A stretch of 64,000 nt of DNA from Neoechinorhynchus agilis (GCA_051530055.1 CM121342.1:11299480-11363479), one strand, 5' to 3'. Positions 20,280 through 62,350 are shown, counted from the stretch's first letter. The notes: generated from the letters alone by a model not told the origin. Program-made: numbers and translations.

Positions 20280-20420
20280 TATGTGTTCTTTGGTGACGAG
20301 AAGAATAGATATTGATTTATTAATTCCCAATGTTTAGTCCTTTTCGTCGGAAAAACACTTAAGCAATCTGAAGAAGTCCGACAAATCAATATCTATTCTT
20401 CTCACCACCAAAAAACACAA
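20280..20420. mobile_element. MITE family A (TIR tgtgttctttggtga(c/t)gagaagaat), copy 1
   Basis: Long terminal inverted repeats; related copies at ~47205-47335 and ~54694-54790. Confidence 0.8.
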
Positions 20421-26918: not shown

Positions 26919-29135
26919 TCATTTATGCGTCTCGATATCCGAAAAGATTGGACAGTGTGGAAAAAAGAGCGGAGGTATAGGAAGGTGCGAGATTGAGGGC
27001 GGACTGTTCATCGATCGAATATCTTCGATCCTCTCCTCATCCGGTTTTATCTGATTATCTTCGAGGATATGCCTCAGAAATTTGACTCTCGGTTGCATAA
27101 ACGAACACTTATCGTTCCTAGCTTTCAAGCCACTATCTTATAACCTTTTTGGGCACTTCTTTAGGATTCTCGAGATGAGATCGGTCATTACTTCCCGTCA
27201 CAATCACATCATCCAAATAGACCGAAACGTTCGGAATTCCATGCAGCAGATTACTCATGTAACGTTGAAAAATAAGTGGGGCGGACGACACTCCATAAGG
27301 TAGTCTGCAGAATTTGTAGTAGCCCATCGGAGTAGATATGGTTAGCAAGGATCGATACTGCGATTCCACAGGCATTTGTAAATACGCCTCTTTCAGATCG
27401 ATTGTGGAATATTTCTGTCCATCGGCAATTTGATACATTGCCTCCTCAAAAGTTGGCATCATGTATGCGTTGGTTGTCAAATGTGGATTGATGGTTGCGC
27501 GAAAATCTCCGCATAATCGTATACCTCCGTTTCGCTTCTTGACCACTACTATCGGAGTCGCCCATTCTATTGTTTTCTTTGAAGCGTCCACCGGTTCCAG
27601 AATTTCTGCTTCTACCATTCGATTGGTCTCTTGACTTATACCTTCTCGAAGCATCACGGGTATTCGCCTCGACGGTATACACTTCGGTGTTGCTTCGGGC
27701 CAGACAAATAATTTCGCCGGGAAAATTTTAATACGCCCTGTTCCCGGCCCGAACAAATCTTTCATCTTTATTAGCAGCTCATCCAACCCGTCAATCTTAG
27801 CATTGTTCGTGATCTGTGATATCGACACTTCCTTCGGTCATATTAAATCGAAAGCCGCTATCCGCGGCCGTCCAAACAATGGATGATCAGTACCATCGAA
27901 ACCACAACTGATAGTTCTTTGAGAATGTTGTTGAGCCCAACGCGGACCATGCATTCACCTTTAGTGCTGATTGTTCCGCCTCCGTAGGTGCGAAGATTGC
28001 TCCTCTTTTGCAAACACGGGGCACCAATTTGTCGCCATCATCGTTCTGGTAATATCGAGATGGCTGCGCCGGTGCCGTATTCCATTGGAACCGATTTTCC
28101 ATTTATCTCTGAAACGATCATCGGCCTGCCACCACTTTTTTCGATTTCATGGACGCCGGTTTCATGATCCGCAGATATATTAGCGATACTCATCTGATCT
28201 ACTTGCCATACTCGGCTACGACAGCATCGCTTGATGTGTCCCTTTCGCTTGCATTTGTGGCAAATGAAATTTTTCGCCCAACATTCTTTACTGCTTGTAT
28301 AATAAGGCCCTCCTCATCTTCCACAACGCAGGTCACTACTTAATCTTCGTTCCATCTCGCGTTTGCTCGTTCCTATTCGATCAACTTTGGCACATAATTC
28401 TTCACGTACTTCATTATCACTACTGTCCCTGGTCAATATCGTCATTGTCCTTTCGGCTGTCTCGTAGGTCGTAGCTACCTTAAGGACCTGATCGAATTCA
28501 AGTCTGAGAATCTGCGTCCTAATTCCTTCGAATGCGATATTCAGTATGAGGAGATCTCACAGTCTATCCTAAATCGCTTCGTTTTCCGTAATTGTTGATT
28601 TTGGGTGAAATTGGCAGGTATTGGCGATTCCACGGGCCTCCGGCATCCATTGCACGTGATTTTGGTCGGATCCCATCTTACATTGTGCAAACGCATATCT
28701 AGCCGCTACCACATGAATTGGTCTCTGATAGTGGTTAGTAAGGGCGGACACTATATTTGCGTAAGTGGTAGAGCTTGATTTGAAATCTTTAATAATTTTT
28801 CCTATCAGTTGAAACGTCTTCGGTCCACTCCATGCTAGTAGATGAGCTTTCTTGTTATTTTCCTCTATGCCATAAGCGCCAAAATGTTGTTCCAGTTGTC
28901 CCACGAAGTCGGACCATGTCTCATCTTCGTATACGAATCGTCGAAATTGCGGAATCAATCTCTGACTGGATTGTTTATGCTCCTTCATTTCTAGTTGTTT
29001 TTGCAAATCGCGATTCCTTGATTGTTCTTCTCGCAACATTTCCATCATCTCCTTCAACACATCCGCTTTGTCCTCGTCGCCAATTGTTAGATGCTTCATA
29101 ACCGTTTTTATTATTTTTATGAACCGCACCCCCAC
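26919..29135 (-). mobile_element. Ty3/gypsy LTR retrotransposon remnant (gag, protease, RT), truncated and frameshifted
   Basis: Gag-like ORF 28569-29135, protease-like GTGAAISILP near 28060, and RT with WATPIVVVKK, RLCGDFR, YSTIDLKEAYLQ and YLDD. No integrase or paired LTRs seen. Confidence 0.9.
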
Positions 29136-30374: not shown

Positions 30375-33300
30375 CTTGGAGAGAATAAAATGGACAAACA
30401 GAGATTGAGCACCTTGATTCTACAGACTTGTGGCCAGGTGAAAGTTGAATCGAACGACGTCCTGAGTGCATCCCACATTCTGACCGATTTCCAAGTAAGT
30501 GCTGAAGCGTGGAAACTATCGATGGAGCTTCTAACTGGAGCTCTGAATGACCTCCACAACGAGTGCAGTATCCATTTGGCAACATTCGCCGCGATGACAT
30601 TAAAAAACAAAATCAAATCGGACAGCTTCGATCGGTTGAGCAACGAAGATAAGCTCGCAATGAAGGATCTTTTGGTTCAATGTCTATCCGGATTTTCCAC
30701 AGTTAGAGTTGTAAGAACGCAGATTTGTCTCTGTCTCGTTTATTGCATCCTTAAAAAACCCGATTGGAGCGATCTTCTGAACTTCATTCTCAGTCTGATC
30801 AATAACGATTCTCGCCTCAGCACTGTTAGTAAGAACGACGCAAGTTTAGACGTACTGACCCTTATGGCCGAAGAAATCACTGGATATGGGGCAAGGACGC
30901 TTAAACTCGGTAAACATAGACGAGAGGAGGTTCGCGATCAACTTAGGTGTATCGAGAAACATGTAATGAAAACTCTGTCTGACATCATGCTACGCCAATC
31001 GATCTTTTTCTTCTTCTTAAAGCATTCCGAGGTATGATAAAATTCGTGCGCTGAATTTTCTCTCTTTTACTAACTCAGCCGAAAAAACAACAACGGGAAA
31101 GCTATGGATCCCAGTACCAATTTTTTTTCGTTGTGCGATTGATCACGCTAACCTCGACCATGATTTTCCGGTTCACTTAAACATATTCGAACCTCTTTTT
31201 CTAGATTTTTTGACCAAGACCACCCTTCTTAGAGCGGTGATCGATTGGATAAATTAACGTCTGTTGAAAATGCAGTACGATGTGCTGGTCAATAATGATT
31301 TCTTTGCAACTTTTGGTCAGTTAGATTCATCAAATCCCAAAGAGAGTGAATATGAAAAAAGTACACCGCTAAAAGCACACCAATTTTCGCTCCGAATTCA
31401 CTCTCGATAAAAAAACAATCACCCTTTGTCCGATGCTGAGTTGTTGATTTACGCGAACTAAAAAAAGAATCGAGGATACTCGCTGTTTGTCGTGAAAGAG
31501 AAGATTTTTATCCTACTGATCCATCTCAATTGTTGTTATTCAAACGTCTCTCTCTCAATAGTTTCCCATTTCTAAATCGCTCAATTCAGTCTTGGTTATT
31601 TTTTACGTTTCTAGTATACCGTGAGCAAGAGCTTGAAAAGTCTTCTGTTTTGTTAGGTACTTTAGAAAGAAACACCGAGTTTTTCTATGATTGGCGATCT
31701 GAGCATTCGTAATATTGACAGCAGCCGACTAAGCGGTATACTTTTCCCAGCGGAAGATCGTTTGTGATAACTGATGGAAGTATTTTGGAGACAGGTCTTC
31801 GTTGCTTTACCGGTTGGTGTGAAGCTCGTTTGTTCAGTGAGACCAGTTTGATGGAATCTCCTGTACTATCCGACATAATATTTGGCATAATATCCGGTCT
31901 TCGAGAGGTGCAAGACGTTGACCACATCGATATCTGTGGTGATGCAATGACGACTTTGTTTGACATGGTATCCGACGATCTTGGAAAGTATCGGAGTTTG
32001 TTGATAAAACTAAACCGAATAATTGTTGGTACCGATTTCAAAAATCATTTTATAAAGCTAATAGTGTCCGTGAACAACGTGTACGGCCCTACGTGCGAAT
32101 GTGATGAGGAATCCTGCAATTCAGATTTTACCGAGATGTTAGATCTTCGCCGAATGGACAATATGTGCCGTGCCTACACCGAACTATGCCGTGCTCTGGT
32201 TAATGTCTATCGGCTCGGTATACCCGATGATGAACTAAACGACACAGCGGTTCTGAGTATCCTTTTGGAAATTTGCCCACGATCGAACTACAAAATTGCG
32301 AATCTTATAATGTCAGCTTGGACGTATTTGGCAGACAATTTATCAATAGCATCATCACCAGGAATTCGAAAAAAGTTCCGCTCTTATTTCCAAAGTATTG
32401 TTCCGGTCACCATAGATGTCTCTACGCTTGGTCGATTCACTCTGCATCGTCAAACTTCCCTCAGGAGATCTGCTCTTGATCTCTTTGAGCTACTTGTCGA
32501 AAATTTAGGAGGCAGACAAGTCGGAGAAATGCTATGCGAAACTCTGCGACAAAGTATGGACAATTTAGAGAAATCCGAAGCAATTGTTTTTTTGCTTCAG
32601 AGCTGTCCACCAGTTAACGAAGATATGAACGCTGTCGTTGAGTCGATTGTTAAAACTCCTCGGGAGACTCTCTCGCAAGATTTTGTACTTTCTTCGGTTG
32701 AGTTCCTCGGTTCGCTTGGATTTTTCCTGAAGAACCGAACGGAGCATCTTCCACATGTTATGGAGTTTCTCTTCGCGGCTCTTAGGACTAAAACGGCCAC
32801 TGGATATGACGGTCACGGTGGCGCCGCTCCAAAGTGGTCCACAGTGGCATCCAAAGCACTTCTTCATGTCTGTACATGTTGTAGCAGCGAACTTGTTGGA
32901 AGCATCGGACACTTTATTGATGCGTCAGTGGCTGCGGCGGTCGAATGCCAGCAACAAATTGTCGTTATCAACCTTATAAAGTGTTCGTCTATGCTTCTAG
33001 TTCACTTAGACGGTCGGGTCGAATATTTCTAGGGGATATCCCATTAAATAGTTCTAGTCTTTATTCGCACTGACCCATACGGGGACAGGAGCTCCAAGAA
33101 GGTCTCAATAGATTAACTGGTATCCTATATCAGGATTTGGTTCAGACCTCACAAGACGATGTTCATCTAGTCCGTAAGTTAATGCACAAACTGGATCGTA
33201 TTTGTTCCGTATATCGCACAATCTTTCAGGCTAAATCGGTCAATGCTCAACTCGATATGCAAGTTCGCTCAGCGCTCGTCGAAACGTTGCGTTCAATATT

Positions 33301-34153: not shown

Positions 34154-35399
34154 TTGCTGAAGGTCGTGGCAAATGATTGAACATCAGTAAACTTCATTTC
34201 ACCTGAAACGAAAAATTATGAATCGAATGCTCATCGCTATAAGTGCTTAAAGGGTGGCCCAGAATTTGTAGAAATGTTTAAATCTTTGCCTCCTAGGTGA
34301 TTGCCAGAATTTAGAGTTGAGGTTTTTCTGAGTTATGCAAACACAAAATTAATGTGACGAATCAAACACAATCCTTGTAAAAAATGAGGAACGATTTAAT
34401 TCAAAAGAGTTTTATTTTATTAGCTTCATTTTTCATTACTTTGTTAGCTTAAGAACCGAGCTTCAATCGTGGAAACAGTACAAATGATACGTAAAATTCT
34501 TATGACGAGATAATTTAGTTGATATTGGACAAAAATTGACGGAAATTTATTAGAGCCTGTAAAATATTGAAATTTGTTTGGCTCAGTATTTTGCATGCAT
34601 GCAATCAAGTTTTATGTTTAAATGGGCACTTGGGCGGGTTGTTGTAATGATAAGGAAAAAGCGAAAATCTCTATTTTAGGAGCTTTCGCCGTATTCATCG
34701 GGAATCTACAATGGCGCATGGAGTTGTGAAGTGTGTTAAAGTAGCGACAACTAAGCGGAAAGCTCGTACCGCTTGTTGAACATTTCTTAGAATTTGCGGA
34801 GCTGATGCCGAGAACTCTCCCTCGTATTGTCTGCGCAAACACCATCCCTTCCAACTGCCTCAGATATAAGTAACGCCTCGGTGATAGATTGTTCCACCGG
34901 GTCCTTGGCGTGGAACTCTGCGTCATGTTTTGCCCATGGTGCGGCCTTAATTGTGCGTCCGGATTCAGCAGATCATGTTTGCGCAGACAATACGAAGGAG
35001 AGTTCTCGGCATCAGCTCCGCAAATTCCAAGAAATGTTCAACAAGCGGGACGAGTTTCAAACTTCGATGTCGCTACTTTAAGATGCTCCAAAGCTCCACG
35101 CGCCTTTGTTGATTCTTGAAGAAGCCGTAAGACGGCGGAAGCTCGAGAATGGCGATTCTCTTTTTCCTCATCATTACAACAGCCCTCCCCCAAATGCCCG
35201 TTTTCGAAAACAAAACTTCATCAATCATGCGACCGGAAAATCTGGTGGTATTTCACAAATTTAAAGTTAATGTTTTTAACACAAAGAGAACCATGGCGCA
35301 AATATTTTTAGAGCGAGGTTAGCTACTTACGTCTCTTTGCCTTCTCACGGCTTGTAAGACGCACAGGTTGCGATGCGATTCGCAGTCTTACTAACACGG

Positions 35400-36460: not shown

Positions 36461-36531
36461 GGTCGCGATTAATTTAATTGAATAATCAAATTTAGTATAT
36501 TAAAAAATATCTTCAGTAAAAATATTAATTA

Positions 36532-36695
36532 TTCTCAATGGCGAATTGTTACACACTCGAGTTTTATTGAAATCAACCTTGCGAATTTTCGAGGCCTCAG
36601 CCTCCTTCTCAAGCATTGCTTGTAAGTTTTTAAATATTCGATTCGCAAGGTTGATTTCAATAAAACTCGAGTGTGTTACAATTCGCCATTGAGAA
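36532..36695. mobile_element. Young 164-bp MITE with ~55-bp near-perfect TIRs, flanked by TA
   Basis: TA|ttctcaatggcgaattgttacacactcgag...ctcgagtgtgttacaattcgccattgagaa|TA. Confidence 0.85.
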
Positions 36696-36906
36696 TACAC
36701 ATCCACCCGAAGGAACAATAGTAAAGTACAAAACGTGCAATCACCATCCTTCTGCAAAATTGGAGCTTTTCTCCTTCCTCGGCTGTCGGATAGAATTAAT
36801 GTTAATTTTTGTTAAATTTTACAATTTTTTTACGAAAACAAGACTCTTTTTTAATAGTTGCGACCGTTTCCAAGGTAATTTAGGTATAAATACGAACAAT
36901 GATGAA

Positions 36907-38308
36907 ATGGACGGCATGCTTTCTCATGAGACGAAATTAAATGTTCCCAATGACACGTCCGCTCCTAAAATATCATCTATAAAAGATGACTCGTGGTCGA
37001 GTGGAGCGAAGCTAACCGAACCTACTCTGTTAGAGCCAAGGAGAACTAAGAAAGCAGCGGAAATGAAGAATTCTGTCAGTGAATCAAAACAGAAAGTGAA
37101 GTTATCAACTTTGGAATTGTCTCCGTCCTTTTCTCGTGACGAGCTCATAGGTTCAGCAGCAAGCCTATTGAATCCAGAGGGGGGCGATAACAAAGTTACT
37201 GCTGAAGGCTTTCTTGATCTTTTTCCGGAACTCCAAGGCAAGCAATTGACTCGAAAACTACTTACCACTAGATTAAAAGCAGAAAAAAACATCAGAAGGG
37301 TATTGTGCTGGATGCTAAAGAATCACAACAAGCAGACTAAAGATTGGCTTGATCGTTACAGGTGGAACTTGTTCTTGCAATCGAACAGCTCTTTTTGATT
37401 CCACTAGCGTTCTAAATTTAGTATTTCCTTGTGGGCCTTCAAAGTTTTGTTACATTTGAATTTTTTTTGCAAGTTAAACGTTTTTATCCTGTTTCATAAA
37501 AACAAGAACCTGCCGATACAAATCGATGGGTCCCAAATCACGTAAAAAATTCATTTCCTCGAAGGAATTATCCCTGTCAGAGGAGTTTATGTTCTTAAAA
37601 TATGCAATCATGAGCATTTCTAACAAGATTCAAGCTCAATCTGCGGAGCTAGAAAATATATCGATAGTTGCAGAGGTCAAGAAGCGATCGTTTCAAAAGT
37701 TCTCTGCAATCCATGAAAAACATTTGAAAAACGTACTATCAATGAACTCTGAAATAAGCGAAGAAGGGTTTATTAAGACTTTGAGAGCAATTAATGACGA
37801 GAGCATGAAAGAGGCGTTAGACATTGCTGCAAAATTTAGGGAATTGCTATCGAAGAAGGATGAAGAACCGGCGAGTAGAGCGATTTTAAGAGAAATGGTG
37901 CACGATGGGATGAGGATGGAGAAAATGAAGAAACAAATTAAGAATTTGATGCAGGATAATATAATTAAAAAAGTAGAAAGTAACATAAATCGATGCGAAG
38001 AACGGTTCAAAAAAATAGAAGAGTCATTACCGAAGCTTATAGAGACCGTTTTACTAGGCGAACGGGTGCACGAAGAGCGAATAAAAGAAAGCGAATTTAA
38101 AGAGGATCAACTTGATCGCATATCGAGCTCCAGCAAGGAAAGTGAGCAAGATTTCAGCATAAAGGAACTTATTAAGCTTAAAAGTCGAGAGGCACAATTA
38201 ACTAAAGATATTGAGATGCTCACAGAAAGGTTTAAAAGAGGTAAAAGGATATTTGAGTCAGATTTCGGCAGTCATGCGAAAATGCTGGATAAGCTGTATG
38301 ATGATTAA
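36907..38308 (+). CDS. Unidentified coiled-coil protein, 2 exons
   Basis: Two long K/E-rich ORFs (36673-37398 and 37526-38308) can be joined in frame by a GT-AG intron at ~37362-37510. Confidence 0.55.
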
Positions 38309-38753
38309 ATATATTTTTTTTAATGTGTTGGATTATTGTCTTCGGGAGGGGGAGAAAAGATACTTTCTTTTTCTCAGTTTTGCCAATCTGAAGATTCAAA
38401 AATTCACCGATGATTTATTTCCCCGATATTTCACGTCGGATAATTCCGACATTTTCCCAAGGTTTGTCATTGCTTGTAAGTCATTTCTTGAGTGTGTTTA
38501 CGTGGTGGATTGTTTTTAAACGGATTGAGTGCTTTTGGATTCTAGATAAGTACTTATAATTTTGACGAGAAACGTCCTGGATGAGTATTTTATCAGAGTT
38601 CGTTAAGATTTGGTTATACCTTTGCGTATTTGCCCTCTTGCACACTGCATAAAAAGATGGAGCGTTTAGAGAGTAGGAGTCTTTTCGTAAACGTCGTCTA
38701 AAAACCGCGCATTCCTAACCTAAAGCAACTATCTCCTCTCTTTTTTATAGACG

Positions 38754-39428: not shown

Positions 39429-39497
39429 AATTTATTGATAGTTGCAACCTTATTAACCTATCGGAGAAGTTAATAAGGTTGCAACTATCAATAAATT
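39429..39497. repeat. Perfect 29-bp-arm palindrome with an 11-nt loop
   Basis: aatttattgatagttgcaaccttattaac / gttaataaggttgcaactatcaataaatt. Confidence 0.9.
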
Positions 39498-43279: not shown

Positions 43280-43378
43280 GAATTTGTGGTTATTCGTGTA
43301 AAATGCTTTTCTTCGAGCGCGAAACACTTTGAATCATCATCTTTTCTCTGTCAGCTTGTCTTTTCTCATCATTATCAA

Positions 43379-45441
43379 ATGAGCTGTCTCAATTCAAAAT
43401 TAATTCAAATAAATGTCGGTGGTCTCGTGTTTGAAACGCTACCTTCGACGCTTAACCGATACCCAAACGCTCTATTAGCCAATGAGAAACGTTTATCAAA
43501 ATATTGGGTTTCTCACCGGAAGCAATATTTTTTTGATCGATCACGCCGATCGTTTGTCGAAATATTCAATTATTACCAGACTGGCGAAATCAAGAAGCCG
43601 CCCGCTGTGAGTCTAAGTGAATTTTTAGACGAAATAGATTTTTTTGAACTGGGAAAAGATGCTTTCTATCAAGTATTAAAATCTGAAGAAATCGAAGAGT
43701 TATGTGAAGATGAAAAGTTGCCTAAAAATAGGTACAAACGGATCATTTGGATTGTTTTCAATAATCCGCTATCGTGCCCGTTAGCCACGGCTATATTTGT
43801 CACTCGTATGCTTCTGGTGCTGCATATCATTGTGCTTTCGTTTGTGGCATCCTCTGGAGATCGCATCAGTAAGAAATTCTTCGATCTAGTTGACAGTGGG
43901 TAGACAGTCGGATCTGATAACGGTTACCCATTTTGGCATTGAAGTCAAAGTAATTCGTTTCCCGATAAAGAAACCGTTTTTAGCCATTTTTATGCTCCGA
44001 TATTTTTCTCCATCCTTTACCGCCAACCTGCTGCCATTATCGAATCTAATTGATATCTCGATTCTTGCTGCCGATCTCCTAATACGCCTAATTGCGTGCC
44101 CTTCAATCAAGCAATTTTTTTCAATATTCTTCAACCGAATCGACGTTGTAGCCGTTATTACCTACACTATTTGCCAAATATTGTCACTTGCAGGAACTAT
44201 AGAAGCCAAGTACGCCCGTCTCGTGCCTACAATGTTCCGAATTCTTCAGCTATGTCGAGTGGTTGAAATCATGCAATCATCGGATTCTTACATCGGAGGA
44301 TCACTCATCAAAGCTCTACAATCCAGTCTAACCGCCGTTGCATCCATCTTCTCAGTCATCATAATAATGTCCATATTCTTCGGACTGATGGCTTACTTTA
44401 TCGAACCTGCGTCATCGGGAAATGGATCTCTAGTCGCCACCGTGAGAGAAGGAGCGATGTCAATCGCTGGAGGCCTTAGAATACGTAGTGTAAGCTAAAA
44501 GATGCAGTTGATTTTCTAACGTTTAACCTTACTGGGTTTTTTCTAAAACTTTTCAAATGTACGCTCGGTCGAATTATTTTGTGGCGTTTTTCGTTGGTGT
44601 TAACACGTCGCTGTTCACCACAACTTCAAGTCTATCATTCCGAAGGATTTTCTCTTGATGATTTTCTGCTTTTTTAGACTCCGACTTAGCTGTCGTTTGC
44701 TCGGGTAATTATAGTACCAGATGATGGTTTGAAAGAAATCAAGGGTTAAAACACAAAAAAGACTAAAATTGGACTGTTTAGCGAATATTTCCGAACTCTT
44801 TTCGGCTGATTTTTATTTCAATAGTCCACCACTGACTTCATCGGTTTGCTTAGTCAAATCTGCCTTTTTGGTTTATCCTAGTTTCTTTTTCCCGTATGAC
44901 TTCAAAGATATTTCACTAATCTCAAAGAGAAAATCCCTTGGGATGATAGAGTTCTGAAAGGTGTCCCCCGTCCGGTTAAAACTGTGTAAAACTTCCAAAC
45001 AATGGCCGAAGAGACTTGCTATTTCGAAACATCTTTCAAATCAATAAAATACGTTTTATCCGGGGGATTACCATCACCACAATTCACATTTGAAAATCTT
45101 TTGATCCACCAAAAAATTATTTACAATGTTACAATACTTAGTCCTAAACACGTTGACATTCTACTTCTATGGGAGACGGGATCTGGTTTGCGCTGGTCAC
45201 CATGACAACTGTTGGTTACGGCGAGATTTACCCAAAATCACAAGCAGGAAGAGTTTTGGCCAGCATTTGTGCCTGTGCTGGAACCGTGGTGATTGCAATG
45301 ATCGTGCCAGTGGTCACTAATTTATACCAAAGACATTACGATGGTCAAATGGTCAAAAGACAGTTACAAAATACTTTAATGAAAGATAATTGGTTTGTGA
45401 AAAATGCCACAGATATTTCCGATCCAGCGGAATCATTATAA
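43379..45441 (+). CDS. Shaker-superfamily Kv channel alpha-like subunit (T1 plus S1-S6), 3 exons
   Basis: T1 domain (INVGGLVFET...YFFDRSRRSF), pore WFALVTMTTVGYGEIYP, a canonical intron at 43869-43983 and a non-canonical interruption at ~44457-45159. Confidence 0.88.
44457..45159 (+). other. Putative non-canonical intron in the Kv gene (703 nt)
   Basis: Perfect terminal inverted repeat ATGTCAA/TTGACAT. Removal gives EGA|STSMGDGIWF (Kv consensus TSIPDAFWW). An alternative register at 44444-45170 also restores the frame. Confidence 0.65.
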
Positions 45442-45753: not shown

Positions 45754-46915
45754 TCACTCACCTCGTCTGTCGCGATACCATCCCTGTTGCACATCTCCGT
45801 CATTTGGACTTGATCTTCGGGACGTTCGCCTTCGGTGACTGCGTCGATGTCGCTCCTCGTCCGAAGAATCCATTGATCGGGACCGGTGGCGCACTTCCTC
45901 GAACAAAGTGTACCGCATTTGCCCGCTGATTGGTTTGAGATGCATGAAATTATCCGAAATGGAGGCCCATAAAGTGTACATAATTCATATCAATACACGA
46001 AAAATGAATTTTTTTGGTAGTTTGGCCAACTAGGATTAAAAAATTCACTTATTTCCGATATTTCACGCCGGATAACGACGACATTTTCCCAAGGTTTGTC
46101 ACTGTTTAACTAAATGTCGGAATTATCTGGCGTGAAATATCGAGGAAATAAATTAGTTGAACTGTTGAATCTTCGGGGTGGAAAAACTATAAAAAAAGTA
46201 TCTTTTCTCCCCTCCCGAAGACAATAATCCAACACATCAAAAAATGATTTTTTTAAATCTGAATGATAAGCCAGAATAATAGAAATGCAGACAAGGTGAG
46301 AGGATGATTGCTGGGGCGTTGATTTGATTCTTTTACCAAAAATCTAAAATAAATCATTTCAGGCTTAAAACCCGGCTGGAAAGGTAGGCCACCATTTTCA
46401 TTACAGAATCCACCTCGAGGGCATTCCCCCATTTGATATTGTCGGCAGCAGGCTTCATGAAAATCAGTCACCGGACTAAGTTCGGCATAGACAGGTCGTC
46501 CGTCAAACCATCGATTATTAAGTTCATCAACGGCCTTTTGGGCATCCTTCTCATATCTGAATTTTACGTAGCAGTTTCCAGCCAAATGCTCACTGAGGTT
46601 ATCACAAATGTTCATTTCCTCAATGGTTCCATACTTGCGTTCCAATTCAAGGAAGATCTCTTCAAATGTCTCATCGAAATGCTTTTGGATCTTTTCATCG
46701 GTTAAATCGTCCTCGGCTAGACTTTTGTCGGCCAAAGCGCTGTTATTTACCGGATTCAAATACACATTTTTTAGAAGAACAGTCTGACTAAACGTTGGTT
46801 TGTTGTGTAGCTTCGAGCAGCGCTCACCGTGCCGGCAAGCGCCTACTTTGAAGTAAAATGAGCAGTTAACCTTGTCTTTTTCTGTGCCGAAAATCGACGC
46901 AAGATAATCCGCCAT
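45754..46915 (-). CDS. U2AF1: U2AF35 small subunit of U2 auxiliary factor (3' exon uncertain)
   Basis: MADYLASIFGTEKDKVNCSFYFKVGACRHG, the UHM domain, ACCRQYQMGECPRGGFC|NFMHLKPIS and an RS-rich tail. Confidence 0.96.
45952..46402 (-). other. Putative non-canonical intron in U2AF1 (451 nt)
   Basis: On the sense strand it reads tgT|AATGAAAATGG...CCATTTCGGAT|Aat. It splits the invariant GGFC|NFMH of ZnF2. There is no AG in the open stretch upstream of exon 2. Confidence 0.85.
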
Positions 46916-47883
46916 GAGTATTATCAACGGCCAACCCGAGTCTCAAATGCGAGATCTATTCTGCAACCGGAAGAATTGAAAAGATGTTCATCGAATAAAT
47001 TCAAGTCCATTGGATCGATTTGACGACGTTTTTCTAAATGTTTCAAGTTTTTCTTCTCAATTTGGGACTAAATCGGAACAATGTCGAGCAAAGTTGTATC
47101 TGAAGGTCCTTTTGTCTGTCCAGTATGCTTCAATCTTAAGTTTCGGCCCAAATTTTTTCGAAGACAAATTGGTTGTAGCTAGGAAATGCCATACTAATTA
47201 AAAATATGTTCTTTGGTGATGAGAAGAATATCGATTGATTCGACGGAAAACACTGATACGACGAAACATTGAGAATTAATCAATCGCTATTCTTCTCATC
47301 ACCAAAGAACACACATAAAAATAACACTGAATTTGTACACTCTGATTGATTAATCGATTTCACTTCATTAAGTATCTATCCTTGCGGCAAAATATAGCGC
47401 TTGCAGTACAACGAGGCAATGCTGCTAGCGACAGCCGAGGAAGGAGAGAGGCTAAGATTTTGCGGACGGTGGTGATTGCACGTTTTGAACTATATTATTT
47501 TTTATTTTTGTACCTGAATGTGCTCAAGGATTTTTAAAATGTAAGTTTAAAATGAAAATTACACATTCAGTGTTAAAACATTCGAGCTATTGGTTCCACG
47601 GGCTTACTTTTTAAATTGTGATGTTCCAAAATGATAGGGATTTCATTGTAGTCAGTACACCGGAACGTCCATTCTCCTGATATATTTTTGCCAATTACGT
47701 GAACCGCAAAACGCTTAAAAGTGGTTTCGCTTGATTTTTTGTCGAATAATTTAGTATATTTATTATTTTATCTTTAGTCTGGCTAGTCGGGCACACTTTT
47801 ACGTGTTGATGTGAGCATCCCTTATACGGCTGATTGTTTTTTTCGATCAGAGAAGTGATTGAATCACAAAGATCCTGAACAAT

Positions 47884-49674: not shown

Positions 49675-50230
49675 TTGCAAATTGCCGTTTAACGCTAATC
49701 CGTGTCAATGCGTTTAAGTAAAAAGTACACTACTGATTATTCCGCCTGCGAATTAACCTTGTTTCAACTAAATCATATCGATTTTTATGTTTATTTCTTT
49801 TCAATAGTGGAAATTCAAATGCCGACACATATGAAAACTTTTTAAGTTCAAAAGGTTTTATTTCCAGCGATGCTCCATTGCATAATCCACCAGCAGAATC
49901 TCCGTGGAAAGCAGTTGAATTTCGATTGATGATTGTCGTTAAATTTATTAACTTCGTTAGGTTGAAAGAGTCAAATCACGGAATGTTTAAAGAATATCTG
50001 AATGAAACTGAGTCCGCTGGTTGAATCGGACCAAAGTATTGAAACGCTCTTTCACTTGAGACCAGAGATTGAAATTTTTATAACTGAAAAATCGATTCAT
50101 TTTCCCGACCTTAAGGATTCATTGTGGCCCTGGGTTTTACTAATTTTATGCCATTTAACGGCATATTTGTACGAGCTTCAAGGCAAAAGTAAAGTTACTC
50201 AAAGCCTTCTCCCTAAACTTCAAAAGCCGA

Positions 50231-51760
50231 GTGGTTTACCCCTTCAACAGCAATTCAGCCATCCTTCCCGGTTACTTTTCCTTCCATACATACCGCGATG
50301 ACCGTCCAGGAGGGGAGGTCTCAATTTACGTACGACAATCGCTACATTACTCATTATCTCTAACAGTCTCTCTACAAAACCCCGATATAGAATTCATCAC
50401 AGTCCACTTCTCAGCTCCTCCAAGAAATGGCCTTGGAGAATTTACGATTGCTGGCGTTTATCGCCCTCCTGCCTCTCGCCCTGAGCCCTCTCTACATCAA
50501 CTTGGTTCCATGAAAGAGCTCATAAACTCCACAAATTAACACCATTTCTTAATTGCAGGGGACTTCAATAAACTATTTCCTCTTCTACCCTTCTCCGAGT
50601 TGCGTCTACTTATTGACTTCCCAACTCGTCTTGACGCTCACCTTGACAAAGTGTTCACCAACATCGACATCCACTCATCCGCCCCGCGAACTCTGACCAT
50701 TTTTCTGCCCTTCACCCCACCTGAGCGTATAAAATCTTCCTTTTACCCGTCTGGGATAAACGAGATCATAACTTTTACACTTTCAAAAAAAATCAATTCT
50801 ATTATTCACACCCTCCACTCGGATAACACAAATGACCCTTTCGTGGCCATGTCCTCTATAACCTCAACCATGGACTCGGTGGACAATTCATTCCTTCGCC
50901 AGGCCTTCTCCGATTTCGATCTAAACTCGTGGCAGATCAACTGGCTCGAAATTTATATTCACAATCGCAAACAATACATTCACTGCCGTTCTACCTCCTC
51001 TATCAGCCTACCCCTCACCAAAAACGTACTTCAAGGTTCTTTGCTGTCACCACTTTCTATTATTTTCCTAAACGACCTCTCTCCTCTAACTCATCATCAT
51101 CCATTCACCACCCCACCTCTCCCTTTCTTTAACCTCTAACGAAATCACACACATAAACGACTTCTGCAACAATCACAAACCACCTGAATTTCTCTAAAAT
51201 TTTCGAAATGATCCCTTAATTCTTTCGAAACCCTGTCCTCCCCCGAGCTTCTAAATGACATCCTACGAGTCACCTTCCTAAGAATTCGGAGTCTCCAATT
51301 TTAATTAAACTTGAAGTGGGACTAGCACATCACTCTCTCCCTCAAGCTCAATACCTTCAAAAATTATCTCTTCAAACATCTCCGACATTTAAGAATCCTT
51401 TCGCCCGATCTCTACAAATTTTACTTCAGTTTATTTTACCCTCCCTCACCTACGGTTATTCCGTATTTTGCAACCTATCAAAATCTCAAATCCGTCGTCT
51501 TGAAGTGTTTCATAAAAGAAAATCTATAATTTGCACAATTGACTTTCCCCCTCTCACCGAATGCCTTGATGCTATTTTCATAAAACAAACAAAACGCCTC
51601 TCAACCCTACCACCACAATTTCTTCCACATATCGCTCCCTTTTCACACGAGCACAACACTCGTAATCCTAATTCGTTTCATCCTCTCTCGACATCGCACC
51701 TCCCTATACCTATGCTCCTTTTTCCATGCTGCCCAATCTTTTCGGATATCATTACCTGAA
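50231..51760 (+). mobile_element. Degraded CR1/L2-like LINE (APE endonuclease and RT fragments)
   Basis: IAGVYRPP, IAGDFN, RLDAHLDKVFTN, LQGSLLSPL and FILPSLTYG, with internal deletions. Confidence 0.85.
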
Positions 51761-52686: not shown

Positions 52687-53373
52687 TTACATGGGATATC
52701 TACCTCCGTATCCTGCACCAGGATAGCCGCTATTCATTGACGGTTGCCCATAACCTCCACCACCATACATCGGCGGTTGTCCATAGCCTCCACCTCCGTA
52801 TTGCGGTTGTCCGTAGCCTCCACCACCGTACATTGGTGGTTGCCCATAACCTCCACCACCGTACATCGGCGGTTGTCCAGAGCCTCCACCCCCGTATCGC
52901 GGTGGTCCATATCCACCTCCTCCTCCGTACATCGGCGGTTGTCCAGAGCCTCCACCCCCGTATCGCGGTGGTCCATATCCACCTCCTCCTCCGTACATCG
53001 GCGGTTGTCCAGAGCCTCCACCCCCGTATCGCGGTGGTCCATATCCACCTCCTCCTCCGTACATCGGCGGTTGTCCAGAGCCTCCACCCCCGTATCGCGG
53101 TGGTCCATATCCACCTCCTCCTCCGTACATCGGCGGTTGTCCAGAGCCTCCACCCCCGTATCGCGGTGGTCCATATCCACCTCCTCCTCCGTACATCGGC
53201 GGTTGTCCAGAGCCTCCACCACCGTACATGGGCGGTTGTCCATAGCCTCCACCTCCATATCGCGGAGGTCCATAGCCTCCACCTCCGTACATCGGCGGTT
53301 GTCCATATCCACCTTCTCCTCCAAACGGCAAGTTACCACCCAAGCCCTGAAGAACATTTTGCAGGAAATCCAT
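52687..53373 (-). CDS. Gly/Tyr/Pro-rich tandem-repeat protein (66-nt unit [22 protein letters not shown])
   Basis: About 5 near-identical 66-nt units plus shorter variants. The Gly-rich frame is the only protein-like one. The true N-terminus may lie in an upstream exon. Confidence 0.75.
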
Positions 53374-54289
53374 TCCCAAGAATTAAATGTGATAATGATG
53401 TAAAACAAGAGAGGATTTTTCTTATGAACTTTATAAATGACTCAAAACGCGTACATCGCTCATGCGTGAAAATTTTTACAACCGAACTACTTTCTTTTAA
53501 AATATGTTGTCATGATAGTTTAGTCGACTCACTTTATACGCAGTTGTGAACTTTTTGAGCAACGAATTCGAATTATATAATTTTGGCCGTGTTCACAAAT
53601 ATCAATGCCATTTAATAAGGTCAATCAGTCGTGGATGGCTGGTAATTGAAATTTATCAGTTCAAAAAATAAGACTGAAATGAAGCTCAAATAATAAATTT
53701 TGAACGATTAAGCGCGAGACGTTTAATTTTTAAATGAGCGAAATGAAGACTACAAGTGAGCTGATGTACGCTAGCATGTGAACTTGTTGCGTGCGAAACT
53801 ATGAACTACGCTTTTAGTATCTTTTCCATTGTTAACTTAAAGAGATGTATATATTCACCTTTTTCAGATTCTTCTAATAAAAAAGAATGGCCTTGGAGGC
53901 TAAGTGTGTAAATTTCGCTTAGGTGTTCTTCAAAGGGTTTCACTATTTCCACTAAGGATCAAAATTAAATATTGTTTAGTAGAAACTCACTGTGAAAGCT
54001 TGGTTATATCTAACGACCAATCAAGATAAATGATTATCGTTTTTACTATCATTAAAAAGCCACACACCTCATTGTAAGTAAAAACTTCTTAAGCACCTAA
54101 AAATCAGTCTGGGTCTTCATTTACTACGCAAATGTTTGTGTGGCAGTTGGTCGCACGAAAACGAAAATGATTTTGATAGAATTCGCTCTGGCGAGGACGA
54201 ACATTTTATTGGTTAGAGGATAACTAAATTAGATGAAGCTAACAAGTAAAATAAAAACACAGTATGTTTAGAAATACCAAGAAAAAGAA

Positions 54290-55420
54290 CGTCTTGCATG
54301 ATTTGCGTGGGCGATGAGCGCATGTCTGCCAGGGTATCTTAGTTTATTAAAAAGGTCAAATTATCAGTTTGGATGTCCAATAAGATACAGAAATTAAAAG
54401 TGATGATCAAATCAATAGACTTCAGAATAAATGGACCTAAATCAATATGATTTTGACGACTAACAAAATAATACGAAATGACGAATCGGGAAAAGGACTA
54501 TGTATATTGTTCACATTTTCGTTAGCTGTGCTCATTCTGATATTGTGCTCGTATTTTGTGCCCTAATTTCAATTTGAAAATGCGGTTTCCAAATGAGCAA
54601 GTCAATACAAAATCCTCGCAGAAACATTACAGAATTTGATTAAAAGATAACTGCAAGAAAGATTCATAAATTATAGTTTAGGTATGTTATTGTTTTTATG
54701 TGTGTTCTTTGGTGATGATAAAAATCGATATTGATTTATTAATTCTCAATGTTTCGTCCGTCTCGTCGGACTTCTTCAGGTTGTGTTCGAAGAAAAATAC
54801 AAGTAAGTTTTACCCGAGAGGGATCTTTAAATTCAAATAAATATTTCGGCTAAACTCACGACGTGATTGTTCATTATCGTCTTAATTGAGCAATAGCTTT
54901 CCAGGGGATGGCAACGCTGCTTTGAATTAAAAAAATTCGATCCCACAACGAAAATAAAAGTTACAAAGTCGCTCGAATTACGGCTATCAATTTTAATTTT
55001 ATAATAAACAATCGATTACGTCACGAATGTATAGGCTAAAATTTACGTAATCGGAGGCTATAAGAAATTCGACTTTCGTGATACAATCAAATTCTTATCA
55101 TCAAAATCAAACTCATAGCCTTTGATTACGTAATTTTTGCCAATGCGTTCGTGACGTCATCGATTGTTCATTATAAAATTCGACCTCATTGCCGTCATTT
55201 GGACTATGTAAACGAGTTGGTCATTCGTCGTGCATGAAGTGCACTTCTTCAATGGCAGTTGAGATTAGAAAGTATGACTGGCAATGCTTCGATTGTAAGA
55301 CCTGCTCAAGGTGCGGAAAAGCTGGGTGCGATGATCAACTTCTGTTCTGCGATCGATGCGATAAAGGCCATTATACGTACTGTCTGGAACCTAAGCTTAC
55401 CCATGCTTTAAAAGACGAAT
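54290..55420 (+). CDS. DPF/PHF10-like double PHD finger gene (partial, possibly a pseudogene)
   Basis: CKRVGHSSC...KYDWQCFDCKTCSRCGKAGCDDQLLFCDRCDKGHYTYCL, with CMICVGDE upstream. The upstream junctions need non-canonical introns and a 1-nt frameshift. Confidence 0.7.
54967..55204. mobile_element. Palindromic MITE family C; second copy/arm at ~56060-56186
   Basis: The arms gtcgctcgaattacggcta...ttataat and attataaaatt...catagccgccattcgagcgac are mutually inverted. Confidence 0.65.
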
Positions 55421-56864
55421 GTATGTGTGCGAAGTCATTCGCGCGACCATCGGCTGTGGAATTTAATTAGAAATTAAATATTTAAAAAAAACAATTTGAT
55501 GCCGTCACAAAAGGTCCGTAAAAAATCCGACAACCGTCGGCTGTAAGATTAAATTCCATATTGAAAAATGAAACTGCTCATGATTGTTGTGTAGTGGCGA
55601 CATCAAAATCATGGTTCGCGGTGACTTACGCATTGACAGAGTAATCATGGAGGCCATAATAATTCGATAATCAAAAACGGTGGAAGGCAACAAAGCGGAT
55701 CACGTTTTATAGATGAGAGTCGTGTAAATGTTCTCGTAACCTTTCATGTCTTTATAAAGGCTCTGGATTCAGCCGAAATATCGATTCAATGAATTTACAT
55801 AATTTTTGTCGCCACTACACAGCAATTAAATTCCATCTCGACATTTCGAAGACGTCACTGAAGTATATTTTGCAATTGTAAACCAAAAACCGGGTATGAG
55901 ACAAAACGTTTGATTACTTCACTAACCTATAGTAGGTAAATAAATTAGGCAACCGTCGGCTGTAAGATTAAATTCCATCTCGACATTTCGATGACGTCAC
56001 CTGTATTCAGGTTGCAAAAGCCACGAAAACACCGACTGGGAAATTAAATTACATCATAAAAATTGGATAACGTCACGAAAGTCGAACTTCTCATAGCCTT
56101 CGATTACGTCACTTTCTTACCTATGAGTTCGTAACACCATCGAATTTTTATTATAAAATTCAAACTCATAGCCGCCATTCGAGCGACTTTTCAACCATAA
56201 TGCGGGTGCTTACTTAATTTTGTTTAATTTATTTCTTGAACATGAAAAACGTTTCCATCGGCCTTTGTAGCATCTTCGAATTCACATTTCGGTTCCGACG
56301 ACCATCAAAAAGTGTCGTTATTTGAAATTCGATCAAAGAAAGCATTAATGTCTAGGCGCGAAGCACACGCAAAGGTGGATCTACGCGATATTCGGTCGGG
56401 AATTTTAGTTTTCACCAAAACGGATTCGGGTATTTGGAGCAAAGCAGTCTTGTTTCAATTAAATCAGATCGATTTTTATGCTCATTTCTTTTCAATAGTG
56501 GAAATTCAAATGCCGACACATATGAAAACTTTTTAAGTTCAAAAGGTTTTATTTCCAGTGATGCTCCATTGCATAATCCACCAGCAGAATCTCCGTGGAA
56601 AGCAGTTGAATTTCGATTGATGATTGTCGTTAAATTTATTAACTTCGTTAGGTTGAAAGAGTCAAATCACGGAAGGTTAAAAGAATATCTGAATGAAACT
56701 GAGTCCGCTGGTTGAATCGGACCAAAGTATTAAAACATGCATCAAACGAAGGACTAGTTGTCGGAAATCAATTTTCTCGTTTTATACGTCAACCGCATTT
56801 ATAGGCACATCATTGATAATTTCGTGGAATATAAGTAAAGGTAGCCAGTAATGAACCAAGAAGT

Positions 56865-59390
56865 GTGGTCCAGAAGCCAGTCGTTTTACCGAACCTTCGA
56901 TCATTTCGAGGTGGATTTATTATAGAGAATATGGTTGATGCATTGCACCATCAAATGGTGAAGATTGATTCCGATGTTGGATGTTCGAATGCAATAATAT
57001 CGATAAACGCAGCAACCAAATTAAATCGAAATGATGAGAGCAAGACGCTACAAATACTCCGGTCGAAGCACCCATGTAGTAGCGGAAGTTTTGAAATTCC
57101 ATCTCCTCCCATACAAGACTGGACGCCCACTCAAATTTCAGAGTTACAAAAGGCCATCTCATCTTTTGCAAATGGTTCGGGTCACGGGCTTGACGGACTA
57201 AGGCCTCAGCACCTAAAGGACATGATGTCCTTTTCAACTGGTGAAGCAGCTCTCTCTCTAGGAAGTGCGCTATCTCGGTTAGTTGACCGCCTGACTGGAG
57301 AGGACCTGAACCACGTTGCAAAGGACCTATTTTTCGGAGCATCATTATGTGCCCTCAGAAAAAATAAGGCGGGATTCGTCCCATCGCCGTATCCTCGGCG
57401 ATACGCCGACTTGCAGGAAAAATTCTCTGTAAACGTATTACAGAGAAAACCGGACAGCAACTTCGTCCAGTCCAACTGGGCTGATGCACATCCTGCGGGC
57501 GGAAACTATTGTCCACTCGCTCCGAAACTTTGCTATGAGAAGCTCAGAGCTGTGCGTGATTCTTAAGTGTGATTTTCAGAACGCCTTTAACTCTCTCAAT
57601 GGAGAAGCCATGTTCTGCGCAATCAGGGATCATGCCCCAGAAGCCTTCCAGTATTTTCTCAATGCCTACGGGACGGCGACTCCTTTGCTTTTCGAAGACC
57701 ACCTCATTTGGTCCGAAAGAGGAGTGTAGCAAGGAGATCCCCTCGGTCCAATCGCATTCTCACTAACAGTAAATCCAATAGCGCATTCTCTCCATTCCAG
57801 CTTTAACGCTTGGTACTTGAATGACGCTACGCTCGGAGGTGATCCCTCCGTTGTACTGCGCGATTTGGAGACGCTGATTAGGGAGACCTCGAAGATGGGC
57901 ATTGAGCTCAATGCTGGAAAATGTGAGCTCCTTGTATTGAATATTGGAGACGCCGCCAAAGTCAAAGAACTAATGGCTGGGTTCGAGGCCGTAGCTCCAG
58001 GTCTGAAACTCGTGACTCGGGAACAACTCAGCCTCCTGGGCAGTTGCGTCTTCGATTCAAATGTGGAAGATGAGATCGGCCATATCATACCGAAACTTTC
58101 GTTGCTGTGCGATAGGGTGTGCGCTCTCTCGGCTCATGAAGCCTTGTTTCTCATAAAGAACGCGCTCTTCATCCCCAAATTATTGTACAAGGTTCGCACA
58201 GCAACATTTTTCAAACATAAGGAAGGATTGGCTAAGCTCGACGGCAAGGTGAGGGCTTGTCTCGAGCGTATTTTAAATGTCCAGCTCTCAGATGAGGCGT
58301 GGCGACAAGCTTCTTTGCCTGTGTCATCTGGGGGATTGGGGATTCGGGCACTAGTGGACCTTGCTTTGCCGGCCTTTCTTGGATCGTTTGATGGGAGCCT
58401 AACAGTATCGAAGAAAATTTTGAAGGAAAAGTTCTGCCTTGACCGGGATTTCATGGTGACGGTTGAGGAATGGTGCCAGCAGACAGGCGCTAACCATGTT
58501 CCCGTGAATGGTCTCAGACAGTCGACCTGGGACGGACCTCTTGTCGCGAGAGCTCACAGCTCTCTACTTTCAGGTTCTCGCGATGGGGTCGTCCGAGCTA
58601 GACTGTTGGCAGTTTCAACACGAAAATCTGGGGCGTGGTTGGAGGATGTTCCTCTGGCATCAGTGGGAACTCTTCTTACTGATGAGGTAACGAGGATCGC
58701 AGTATCCTTAAGACTCGGTCTCCCGATATGCACGCCCCATCGCTGTCGATGTGGGTCTTTGGTTGATGCTTTCGGGCGACACGGTCTCGTCTGCAGAAGG
58801 TCAGGAGGAAGGTTATCACGCCATTCTGAAATCAATAACGCAATTTCTCGGGCGTTGAGAACGGCGAACTTCCCGAACATCCTGGAACCCGGAACCCGCA
58901 AACCTTTGTCGACTAGACGGCCGTAGGTCCGATGGAATTTCGGTCTTCTCGTGTCGGGAGGGCAAATGCCTTCTTGGGGACGCCACGTGTGTGGACACCC
59001 TCGCAGCCAGCAACATCCGCTACTCCCTCGAAATCGCCGGTGGTGCCGCCAGTGCAGCGGAAGGGAGGAAAATACGCAAATATATTCAGTTATCGAGGGC
59101 TCACTATTTTGTTCCCTTTGAGGTAGAGACGTATGGAGCGCTCGCAGCTCGGCACTCTCTCTGCTCCAGGATCTCTCGAAGAAATTGAGAAAGGCAACCG
59201 GAGACTCAAGAGCAGGTGTATTCCTTCGACAAAATATCTCGCTGGCAGTACAACGAGGCAATGCTGCCAGCGTGATGGCGACGGTCGAGGAAGGACAAAA
59301 GCTGGAATTTGGCGGGAGGTGGTGAGTGTGCTTCAAACAGATTGTTTGAATTGTTAAAAATATATTATGTTTTCAAAAAAAATCGACAGC
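56865..59390 (+). mobile_element. CRE-like non-LTR retrotransposon (RT, CCHC zinc motif, PD-(D/E)xK endonuclease), inactivated
   Basis: GLDGLRPQHLKD, DFQNAFNS, GV*QGDPLGP, WYLNDATLGG, GGLGIR, CRCG..VDAFGRHGLVC, RHSEIN, QRGN-type C-terminus and an A-rich tail, with stops and frameshifts. Confidence 0.88.
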
Positions 59391-60829: not shown

Positions 60830-62350
60830 CGATTCTGCATACCAGATAAAAGAATGATTCAGATTGAAGTGTTGGCTCTGCAAACATTTCATCCTACGAC
60901 AATTCGCGAAAATAAACAAAATTTGCTATGGACACGAAACGTTTTACGAAAAATACGCTGTCGTGGAGGCTAAAGAGTTTTGGGAACCATCTATTGCCAA
61001 GAAAAGCAGAGCATTCTAAGAAAACACAAGAAGGTATTGATGAATTATTTGACGATATCTTGACGGATGCGAGGGTACTATAATTTTTTACCTTGAATAA
61101 TTTATACACTGAGCAAAAATACCTACAAGAAAGTCGTTGTGATACGAAGTTTTGCCTAATGACAAGTTACCATCATAAAGAACTTGAGAACAAACAGAAA
61201 ACGCTAGCGAATGCCTTGTGGCATATTGAGGATTCCAATGGAACTCAGCAGAATACTTGACTCGAAGACAGCCAAAAGAGAAACCAACGCTTAAATCCTA
61301 AGCGAACTCAACAAATCGCAGCGTACAAAAAGGCTCAGAAAGATTGAAACGAATAGATTTCAAAAGGCAAAAAAACAAGGAGACTGGACGATATCCGCAT
61401 TCAAAAATATTACCGTAATTCCTTGAAAAAATTGAAAGATCGAATACCTTTTTAATTCAACCTCAATAACTTATCAGTTTAAGAAGTAGAAATGCTCGAG
61501 CTCATTTCAAATCACTTGGAAGAACACATCGACACCGTTCCACAAAAATGGTGAAACAAAACGTGCACTCAATTCGACGTCGAGGAAACCTTTTAAATAT
61601 GGAAAAAGCACGGTTTTAATTCATGCATAGATCGTATTACGTCGACGTATTCATTTATTAACTTTACATTTTGATATCGCCAGAGAATTGCCAACGTTCC
61701 ACATAATAAAATGTATTCGAGACTGAAAAAGTTGCTTACATTCTACAAGCTTTGTTTTGTAAAAAGATAGAATTATTGAAAAAATTATTCTTTTTTAATT
61801 GTTATTTCGAATGTCTACGATTGATCGAAAAGCAGAAAGTACTTAAAACTAAAGAAGGTTTCGAAAAATTTGAATTGTTAGACACCCGGAAGTGGACGCT
61901 GCCAGTATAGACCGAGAGACACTCAAATGATTGCTAATGGTATGCACATCCGGAACACCTTTCTTGTTCAAGGATCGGTGTTATCTTCATACTGAGAGAG
62001 TTTCTATGGGATCACCTTTGGGTCCAACTGTGGCTAACGTCTACATTAACTATGTAGAACAGCGGACATTGGATAGCACCGCGCAAGAGGCCCGTCCCAG
62101 CTTCTACATTCGATATGTAGATGACATCTTAACCATATTCAAGGAAAAAGCAGATGTGATCAATTTCAAAAATAAAATTGAAGCAATTTTAAGCTTGAAA
62201 TTTACCATTGATGAATGTGACAGGCAAGATTCCCATTTATTGGACGTCTGAATATCGCTAAAACCGGGACAACCACTAGAAACCTTCTTCTATCACAAAC
62301 CAAGTGATAATGGAGTCTACACGCATTTCCAGTCCTTTACTCCCTTCAAA
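60830..62350 (+). mobile_element. Penelope-like element remnant
   Basis: RT motifs SMGSPLGPTVANVYI, YIRYVDDIL and LLDV in 61931-62251, followed by FYHKP and GVYTHF; degraded. Confidence 0.8.

Follow-up and report, generated by a model that had tools for sequence, protein, structure and literature searches.

We analysed a stretch of 64,000 nucleotides from the acanthocephalan Neoechinorhynchus agilis (GCA_051530055.1, CM121342.1; the whole of it is called the window below), in which the minus strand from 46915 to 45754 carries the gene for the splicing factor small subunit U2AF35 (U2AF1). The gene runs from an ATG at 46915 to a TGA stop at 45756-45754, and its coding sequence is broken by an interruption of 451 nt. 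Exon 1 (46915-46400, minus strand, codons 1-172 from Met to Asn) encodes zinc finger 1, the RRM/UHM domain and ligands 1-3 of zinc finger 2. It ends in ...GGATTCTGTAAT, with the last T at 46400, so that the codons at its 3′ end read GGA TTC TGT AAT. Exon 2 (45948-45754, minus strand) starts with TTCATGCAT at 45948 (codons TTC ATG CAT) and encodes FMHLKPIS..., with the His ligand for zinc finger 2, the conserved motif LKPIS and a tail rich in Arg and Ser; it has 64 open codons and then the stop, TGA. The interruption lies between Asn and Phe in the C-N-F-M-H of zinc finger 2, between the third Cys and the His. On joining the two exons conceptually, a product of 236 amino acids is obtained with two zf-CCCH domains and one RRM_1 domain (Pfam), and it is in this conceptually joined product only that the finger, UHM/RRM, finger and Arg/Ser tail of the U2AF35 family are complete. 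The product matches U2AF23 of S. pombe (PDB 4yh8) with an E-value of 8e-71 over residues 1-190, and the alignment is free of gaps across the junction. Ser34 (in RCSKLH) and the Gln of CCRQ are both retained, in line with the original prediction, in which the AG-contacting residues looked intact; Ser34 is numbered here relative to what we take to be the human U2AF35 sequence. The best database match is U2AF35 of Pomphorhynchus laevis, with 88% identity. For exon 1 the amino-acid identity to P. laevis is 96%, the non-synonymous divergence (dN) is 0.045 and the synonymous divergence (dS) is saturated, so that only long-term constraint can be stated between the two species; judged by this comparison the gene is under very strong long-term constraint. 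The use of dN/dS as a test of constraint since the insertion was dropped, since synonymous sites are saturated.

The interruption is bordered by a direct repeat of TAAT on the minus strand, the left copy at 46403-46400 (within the Cys-Asn codons TGT AAT) and the right copy at 45952-45949, with an inserted segment of 447 nt (46399-45953, 35% G+C) between them; the 451 nt are thus the 447 nt plus one TAAT. As TAAT is present twice, five equivalent registers are possible for the interruption. The segment 45952-46402, which according to the original prediction splits the second CCCH finger at GGFC|NFMH, is one of these five. The P. laevis orthologue lacks the inserted segment; it is an uninterrupted open reading frame of 774 nt (2697-3470 of a 9.5-kb locus) and reads TGTAAT|TTTATGCAC (TGTAAT|TTT) at the homologous point, i.e. 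an empty site. In the U2AF35 gene of the bdelloid rotifer Rotaria (1501-3226) introns are found at LAG|N, at QMG|D and after KPIS, and none at N|F. With the site empty in P. laevis and the Rotaria introns elsewhere, the segment is a lineage-specific insertion, and an old intron at a conserved position was ruled out on the same grounds. It may be noted separately that, the insertion aside, U2AF35 has no introns in both acanthocephalans as against three in Rotaria, a gene structure which suggests that the acanthocephalan lineage either lost the U2AF35 introns completely or had the gene replaced by a retrocopy.

The ends of the segment form terminal inverted repeats. The 5′ arm GAAAATGGTGGCC (13 nt, 46399-46387, minus strand) pairs with the 3′ arm GGCCTCCATTTC (12 nt, 45967-45956, minus strand, followed by GGA and then by TAAT) over 11 bp with one bulge and one mismatch, and a repeat search gives 11 nt at 91% for the same arms. 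The duplex of the terminal 22-mers has an energy of -17.8 kcal/mol, and the paired ends with TAAT on either side that had been proposed for the segment are therefore present. On comparing this duplex with 3,436 equally spaced pairs of 22-mers within the window, 0.17% were as good (empirical p 0.0017). As the boundaries were set independently by the empty site of the orthologue, the p-values given here and below are not inflated by the choice of ends. The terminal stem is part of the minimum-free-energy fold, its pairs having probabilities of 0.97-1.0, and the 491 nt around the segment have a fold z-score of -6.8. The longest stop-free stretch within the 447 nt is 77 codons. Six-frame peptides translated from the segment had no homologue among 5.8 billion predicted proteins beyond the open reading frame of the window itself. 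A search of the segment with Rfam returned nothing beyond generic hairpins, all scoring far under the gathering thresholds, and no tRNA was found. A group I or group II self-splicing intron and a tRNA-type bulge-helix-bulge intron were also considered and rejected, the possible 4-bp central helix having a pair probability of 0.05-0.07. The terminal repeats, the duplication relative to an empty site and the small size without a transposase are the marks of a miniature inverted-repeat element. Taken together, a target duplication of at most 4 nt at boundaries set by homology, terminal repeats, small size and lack of coding capacity establish, at the level of the sequence, that the segment is a miniature inverted-repeat (non-autonomous class II) DNA transposon inserted in the coding sequence of U2AF35. 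The duplication could be TA, TAA or TAAT, and the element is for this reason not assignable to a transposon superfamily.

The insertion is composite, in that an outer element of ~213 nt encloses a nested palindromic element of 234 nt (family B, 46011-46244, no strand assigned), whose internal arms at 46056-46086 and 46112-46142 are 87% complementary. Family B is flanked here by the direct repeat AAAAATGA(A)TTTTTTT at 45991-46015 and 46230-46254. A second copy (22829-23011, plus strand, 87%) is present downstream of the first coding block of an ALG-type glycosyltransferase gene, where from the layout of the gene it apparently lies in an intron and splits no reading frame, and a third copy (38316-38475, minus strand, 86%) directly follows the stop of the reading frame at 37526-38308. 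There are thus three copies of family B in 64 kb, and the two outside U2AF35 are both outside coding sequence. The nested part is therefore multi-copy in the window, and the outer element was seen once across the window, the P. laevis locus and the predicted proteins. In the original prediction the segment was thought to have absorbed the family B repeat as a tolerated intron would. The repeat and its relatives are indeed found, but the composite may have transposed as one unit, in which case a tolerated intron would not follow from the nested repeat; with no second copy found of the outer part, family B may either have arrived after it or have travelled with it, and the argument from absorption is not decisive. 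Small hairpin transposons are common in this compact genome. One palindromic miniature element of ~105 nt (47207-47311) is located ~300 nt upstream of the U2AF35 start codon and has relatives at 20268-20351 and 54690-54770, and other self-complementary elements are found at 20282-20419, 25046-25210, 36530-36697, 39429-39497 and 54961-55211.

As regards splice sites, an in-frame TGA (45987-45985, minus strand) is present 39 nt upstream of exon 2 without any AG in between, so that exon 2 is open only back to this TGA, as had been noticed originally. The AGs closest to the start of exon 2 are at -101, -83 and +21. All in-frame GT-AG, GC-AG and AT-AC pairs were enumerated between mid-exon 1 and the end of exon 2. 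None of the GT-AG and GC-AG pairs keeps C-N-F-M-H, each one of them deleting the His ligand of FMH. FMH is kept solely by bare AT..AC dinucleotide pairs, and these add LWASISD and have no U12 consensus. U12 signals were also looked for in the segment, which has no ATATCC or GTATCC donor and no TCCTTAAC-like or CCTTAAC-type branch site. The earlier claim that GT-AG splicing cannot join the exons is thus borne out by the full enumeration, which leaves the spliceosome without any GT-AG, GC-AG or U12-type way of restoring the finger.

An ordinary spliceosomal intron, either of the U2 type (GT-AG or GC-AG) or of the U12 type (AT-AC), could still be argued from the GTAATG at the end of exon 1 (TCT|GTAATG) and from the tract before the 3′ end, which is 55% pyrimidine like the real acceptors here. 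It is opposed by the stretch from the in-frame TGA to exon 2 that has no AG, by the loss of the FMH His in GT-AG and GC-AG pairs and by the absence of U12 donor and branch-site motifs from the segment. Adenosine-to-inosine editing that makes an AG in TAAT was considered as well and rejected, for by our own reasoning it gives no in-frame junction: the sole GU donor (TCT|GTAATG) would lead to a frameshift or a Cys-to-Tyr change. An assembly artefact was considered too, but a clean duplication with inverted repeats at a homology-defined site is unlike a misassembly. Even taken together, an ordinary intron and an artefact are very improbable in our view.

Five other gaps between consecutive reading frames were examined within the window. 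Two are in a Shaker-type voltage-gated potassium (Kv) channel gene (43286-45441, plus strand; BTB/T1 domain, S1-S6, TVGYGE pore), and both of these (43896-43983 and 44488-45175) have in-frame GT-AG solutions. The gap at 44488-45175 was first a candidate for a second AG-less interruption, as the last exon is open only to a TGA, but it is resolved by GT-AG with a donor A|GTGTAAG at 44488, a pyrimidine-rich acceptor and an AG ending at 45175. In an importin gene, the gaps from 31032 to ~31721-31733 and from ~33000-33018 to 33088-33145 both have in-frame GT-AG solutions, and the short gap at ~23925-23976 in the ALG-type gene reads as a GT-AG intron. A general non-canonical pathway, as invoked in the original prediction, therefore has no sign in the window, where all five of the other gaps examined read as GT-AG; the cross-regulation between two splicing systems that was suggested along with it is speculation. 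We also scanned the window for the signature of the insertion, i.e. a 4-nt direct repeat, a terminal duplex and a restored open reading frame. On one strand alone 729 of 42,484 candidates pass, and with hundreds of chance passes the signature is uninformative without homology, for which reason the scan was discarded.

If the segment is retained, a protein of 220 amino acids results in which the His of zinc finger 2 is missing and a junk tail of 47 residues is added. The public gene call P0002 (GCA_051530055.1, CM121342.1, 16,375,937 bp) is exactly this shortened open reading frame, ending inside the element; gene predictors thus shorten U2AF35 at the insertion. The call is what would be expected if the insertion were a non-functional allele, recent and polymorphic (perhaps heterozygous in one sequenced female), that was kept by the assembler, with intact alleles supplying the function. 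To this one may add the perfect target duplication and the undecayed exon 2, as for a young insertion, the lack of such an element in any other exon of the window, and an outer element without another copy in 64 kb. Also, the authors who described SOS splicing, an excision of exonic DNA transposons from RNA, call recent exonic DNA-transposon insertions rare and purged (PMC12779559). The make-up of the sequenced material argues the other way. The assembly (46.2 Mb, N50 16.4 Mbp, three major contigs; the transcriptome has 39% G+C) was produced with MaSuRCA, using Illumina and Nanopore reads from ~50 pooled worms and from single females, and RNA-seq was from 74 worms (PMC12690905). With ~90x Nanopore coverage from the ~50-worm pool (PMC12690905), the assembled allele is probably common, and a rare, recessive-lethal allele should not become the consensus. 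Moreover, the shortened protein still has the domain that binds U2AF65, and this suggests a dominant-negative cost. As the gene has no other intron, the shortened protein would also escape decay that depends on the exon-junction complex. We consider a null allele unlikely on the whole.

The other way of accounting for a retained segment, and one that we hold to be no likelier, is that the full gene is dispensable, either because the shortened protein suffices, because U2AF35 is being lost, or because there is an unrecognised second source of U2AF35. Budding yeast is viable without U2AF35. In N. agilis, the genome and the transcriptome are without 40-45% of the metazoan BUSCO genes (PMC12690905), which would be in keeping with such a loss. 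The search for a second copy was made in the predicted proteins of public assemblies, and among the best 120 of the 2,899 U2AF35 matches the only protein assignable to this assembly is the shortened open reading frame itself. That the search rested on predicted proteins only, and on the best 120 matches, leaves some room for a second source; a conserved second copy, on the other hand, should rank at the top of such a protein search. It also speaks against dispensability that the constraint on exon 1 is very strong (dN 0.045, dS saturated) and that exon 2 is still open. Introns with a GT donor and an AG end are the rule in the window, so that a reader of the AG should still be needed. The S. 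pombe protein touches RNA with each of its two zinc fingers in PDB 4yh8.

Alternatively, the element may be removed at the level of DNA, by a transposase or by programmed elimination that excises it from the somatic chromosomes, so that the gene would be whole again in the tissues expressing it. Inverted repeats with a target duplication are the substrate of a cut-and-paste transposase, and the internal eliminated sequences of ciliates are removed precisely at short direct repeats. However, the window has no transposase, cut-and-paste excision mostly leaves a footprint behind, and the whole-worm DNA that was sequenced, which is mostly somatic, still has the element. We know of no programmed DNA elimination in acanthocephalans, and give removal from DNA very little credence.

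From the pooled assembly, the strong constraint together with an open exon 2, and no second U2AF35 seen, we infer that the insertion is compatible with life, and on this basis a hairpin-guided excision of the element from RNA at TAAT is favoured over a broken or a dispensable copy. We hold this reading tentatively, with a confidence that stays somewhat below even. To call the segment an intron already assumes such a removal. In the proposed excision, the removal would be steered by RNA structure and not by splice-site sequence. The terminal-repeat stem would stand on one side and a predicted helix between the two exons on the other, formed by the exon 1 arm GAGGUGGAU (46416-46408, minus strand) with the exon 2 arm AUGCAUCUC (45945-45937, minus strand), and both TAAT copies, and hence both junctions, would be held opposite one another in one internal loop. 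In the predicted fold the exon 1-exon 2 helix has pair probabilities of 0.8-0.99 and an energy of -9.5 kcal/mol (empirical p 0.02); it may be a mere reflection of the palindromic target preference of the transposase. Cutting and rejoining in register anywhere within TAAT would give ...GGFCNFMH... exactly, and a precise join would connect GGATTCTGTAAT to TTCATGCATCTC, with GGTGGATTCTGTAAT|TTCATGCATCTCAAA as the junction sequence. The mode of action would be like that of SOS splicing or of the introners with inverted and direct repeats in Amoebophrya, Fritillaria and euglenids.

Several points weigh against excision from RNA. We infer it entirely, the stem is only ~13 bp, and the inverted repeats of Tc1 are far longer at 54 bp. 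An indel of a single residue in C-x3-H would destroy the finger, so that an exact join is needed, and SOS splicing is reported to be imprecise, with rescue limited to insertions at poorly conserved places (PMC12779559). No second such interruption was found in the window, and no further copy of the outer element in the window, the 9.5-kb P. laevis locus or the public predicted proteins. Also, a hybrid assembler need not choose the majority allele. Apart from these points, the precisely joined protein is not found in the public protein collection, where RNA-seq of this species is probably absent, and the supplement of the N. agilis paper has no mention of U2AF (PMC12690905). The stronger form of the same reading, in which the insertion is fixed in N. 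agilis and is excised from every U2AF35 mRNA precisely at TAAT, guided by structure and independently of the spliceosome, is possible but doubtful.

Among the other features of the window, a tandem array at 8770-11462 (with similarity up to ~11613) has a 267-bp unit in ~10 copies with 92% identity and is satellite-like, and at 571-1398 a unit of 377 bp is repeated 2.2 times with 92% identity. A Gly/Tyr/Pro-rich protein is encoded at 52687-53379 (minus strand) by a 66-bp tandem repeat, the array of which covers 52849-53322, and the region of ~50-54 kb has a strongly negative GC skew. Remains of retroelements with gag-like and reverse-transcriptase-like frames, as read by translation only, are found at 27133-29135 (minus strand) and at 50231-51759, 56865-58926 and 61931-62251 (plus strand). 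A segment of 288 nt is 97% identical between 49758-50045 and 56449-56736. A short repeat family of ~95 nt (47384-47478, 23502-23596, 36714-36788 and 59220-59329) has two copies that are 97% identical, a similarity which suggests recent activity. Just downstream of the importin-like gene there is a larger foldback element with inverted repeats of ~240 nt (34604-34841 and 34976-35221, 79% identity, 135 nt apart).

The exonic miniature transposon in U2AF35 may be a newly arisen non-canonical intron. If it is removed from RNA, this would be a natural case, in a wild animal and in an essential and very conserved gene, of a transposon being excised from mRNA independently of splice-site sequence, and the exact join that is required would mean that such a pathway can be precise. 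It would also mean that a fresh transposon can act as an intron from the outset in an animal with a conventional spliceosome, a step in the origin of introns that has so far been inferred mostly from protists and one tunicate lineage. If the insertion is moreover fixed and excised, an animal with ordinary GT-AG introns would need hairpin-directed excision in order to make its reader of the 3′ AG, and an SOS-type pathway would have, for the first time, a substrate in an essential gene that is natural, fixed and obligatory. If the segment is not removed, we would be looking at a disrupted allele, or at a core splicing factor in an early phase of decay in a parasite whose genome is strongly reduced, which is of narrower interest.

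Exonic transposons that are partly rescued by splicing include the Ds and dSpm alleles of maize and the Tc1 insertions in unc-22 and unc-54 of C. elegans. In maize the sites used are cryptic GT-AG ones within the ends of the element or close to them, whereas the U2AF35 element has no such working pair. The nonconventional introns of euglenids have terminal pairing, non-canonical borders and often junction repeats that resemble target duplications (PMC11282704, PMC12501133), and the U2AF35 segment is like them in its paired ends, in its non-canonical borders and in the target-duplication-like repeats at its junctions. It is unlike the euglenid introns, which belong to protists and are excised as circles, in that their positional pairing consensus, CAG/CTG at +4-6 / -8-6, is absent here. 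In the tunicate Fritillaria borealis, ~95% of the introns are non-canonical and have come from miniature transposons (PMC11282704; Henriet et al. 2019), and their spread was accompanied by duplicated and divergent U2AF1 and U2AF2, the spliceosome having co-evolved (PMC13326754). The similarity to the present case is in an animal gene, a lineage-specific position, an origin from a miniature transposon, the absence of GT-AG and a link to U2AF1 biology; the difference is that here U2AF35 has a highly conventional sequence and is the very gene that is interrupted.

In architecture it is the introners of Amoebophrya that come closest, which have inverted repeats of 8-20 nt joining the intron ends, direct repeats of 3-5 nt over the borders and no fixed terminal dinucleotides (PMC7789003; Farhat et al. 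2021), since the U2AF35 segment has the same combination of inverted repeats and direct repeats. The non-canonical introns of transposon origin in F. borealis and in euglenids are likewise near to it in this respect. Amoebophrya is a dinoflagellate in which there are thousands of these elements, making up >60% of its introns, with their removal backed by RNA-seq (PMC7789003). Here, in contrast, we have a single case in an animal whose introns otherwise look GT-AG, with a putative removal. Many such introns per genome are accordingly not what the window displays, the other gene gaps in it being all GT-AG. In SOS splicing, exonic DNA transposons are excised from RNA in C. elegans and human cells through pairing of their terminal repeats and independently of GU-AG (PMC12779559; Zhao et al., Nature 2025). 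It depends on AKAP17A, CAAP1 and RTCB, and has been shown on Tc1, Tc3, Tc4 and HSMAR2, all of which are long-repeat elements (PMC12779559). Unlike these, the stem of the U2AF35 element has ~13 bp, and the join, inside a zinc finger, must be exact. As in the SOS substrates, an element of the cut-and-paste type with terminal repeats is present in a coding exon of an animal and its ends are predicted in silico to pair, and the cut sites that would be required, at 0-7 nt beyond the repeats ('in or near' them), are not GU-AG. By its host and by its probable mechanism, SOS splicing is the closest of the known systems.

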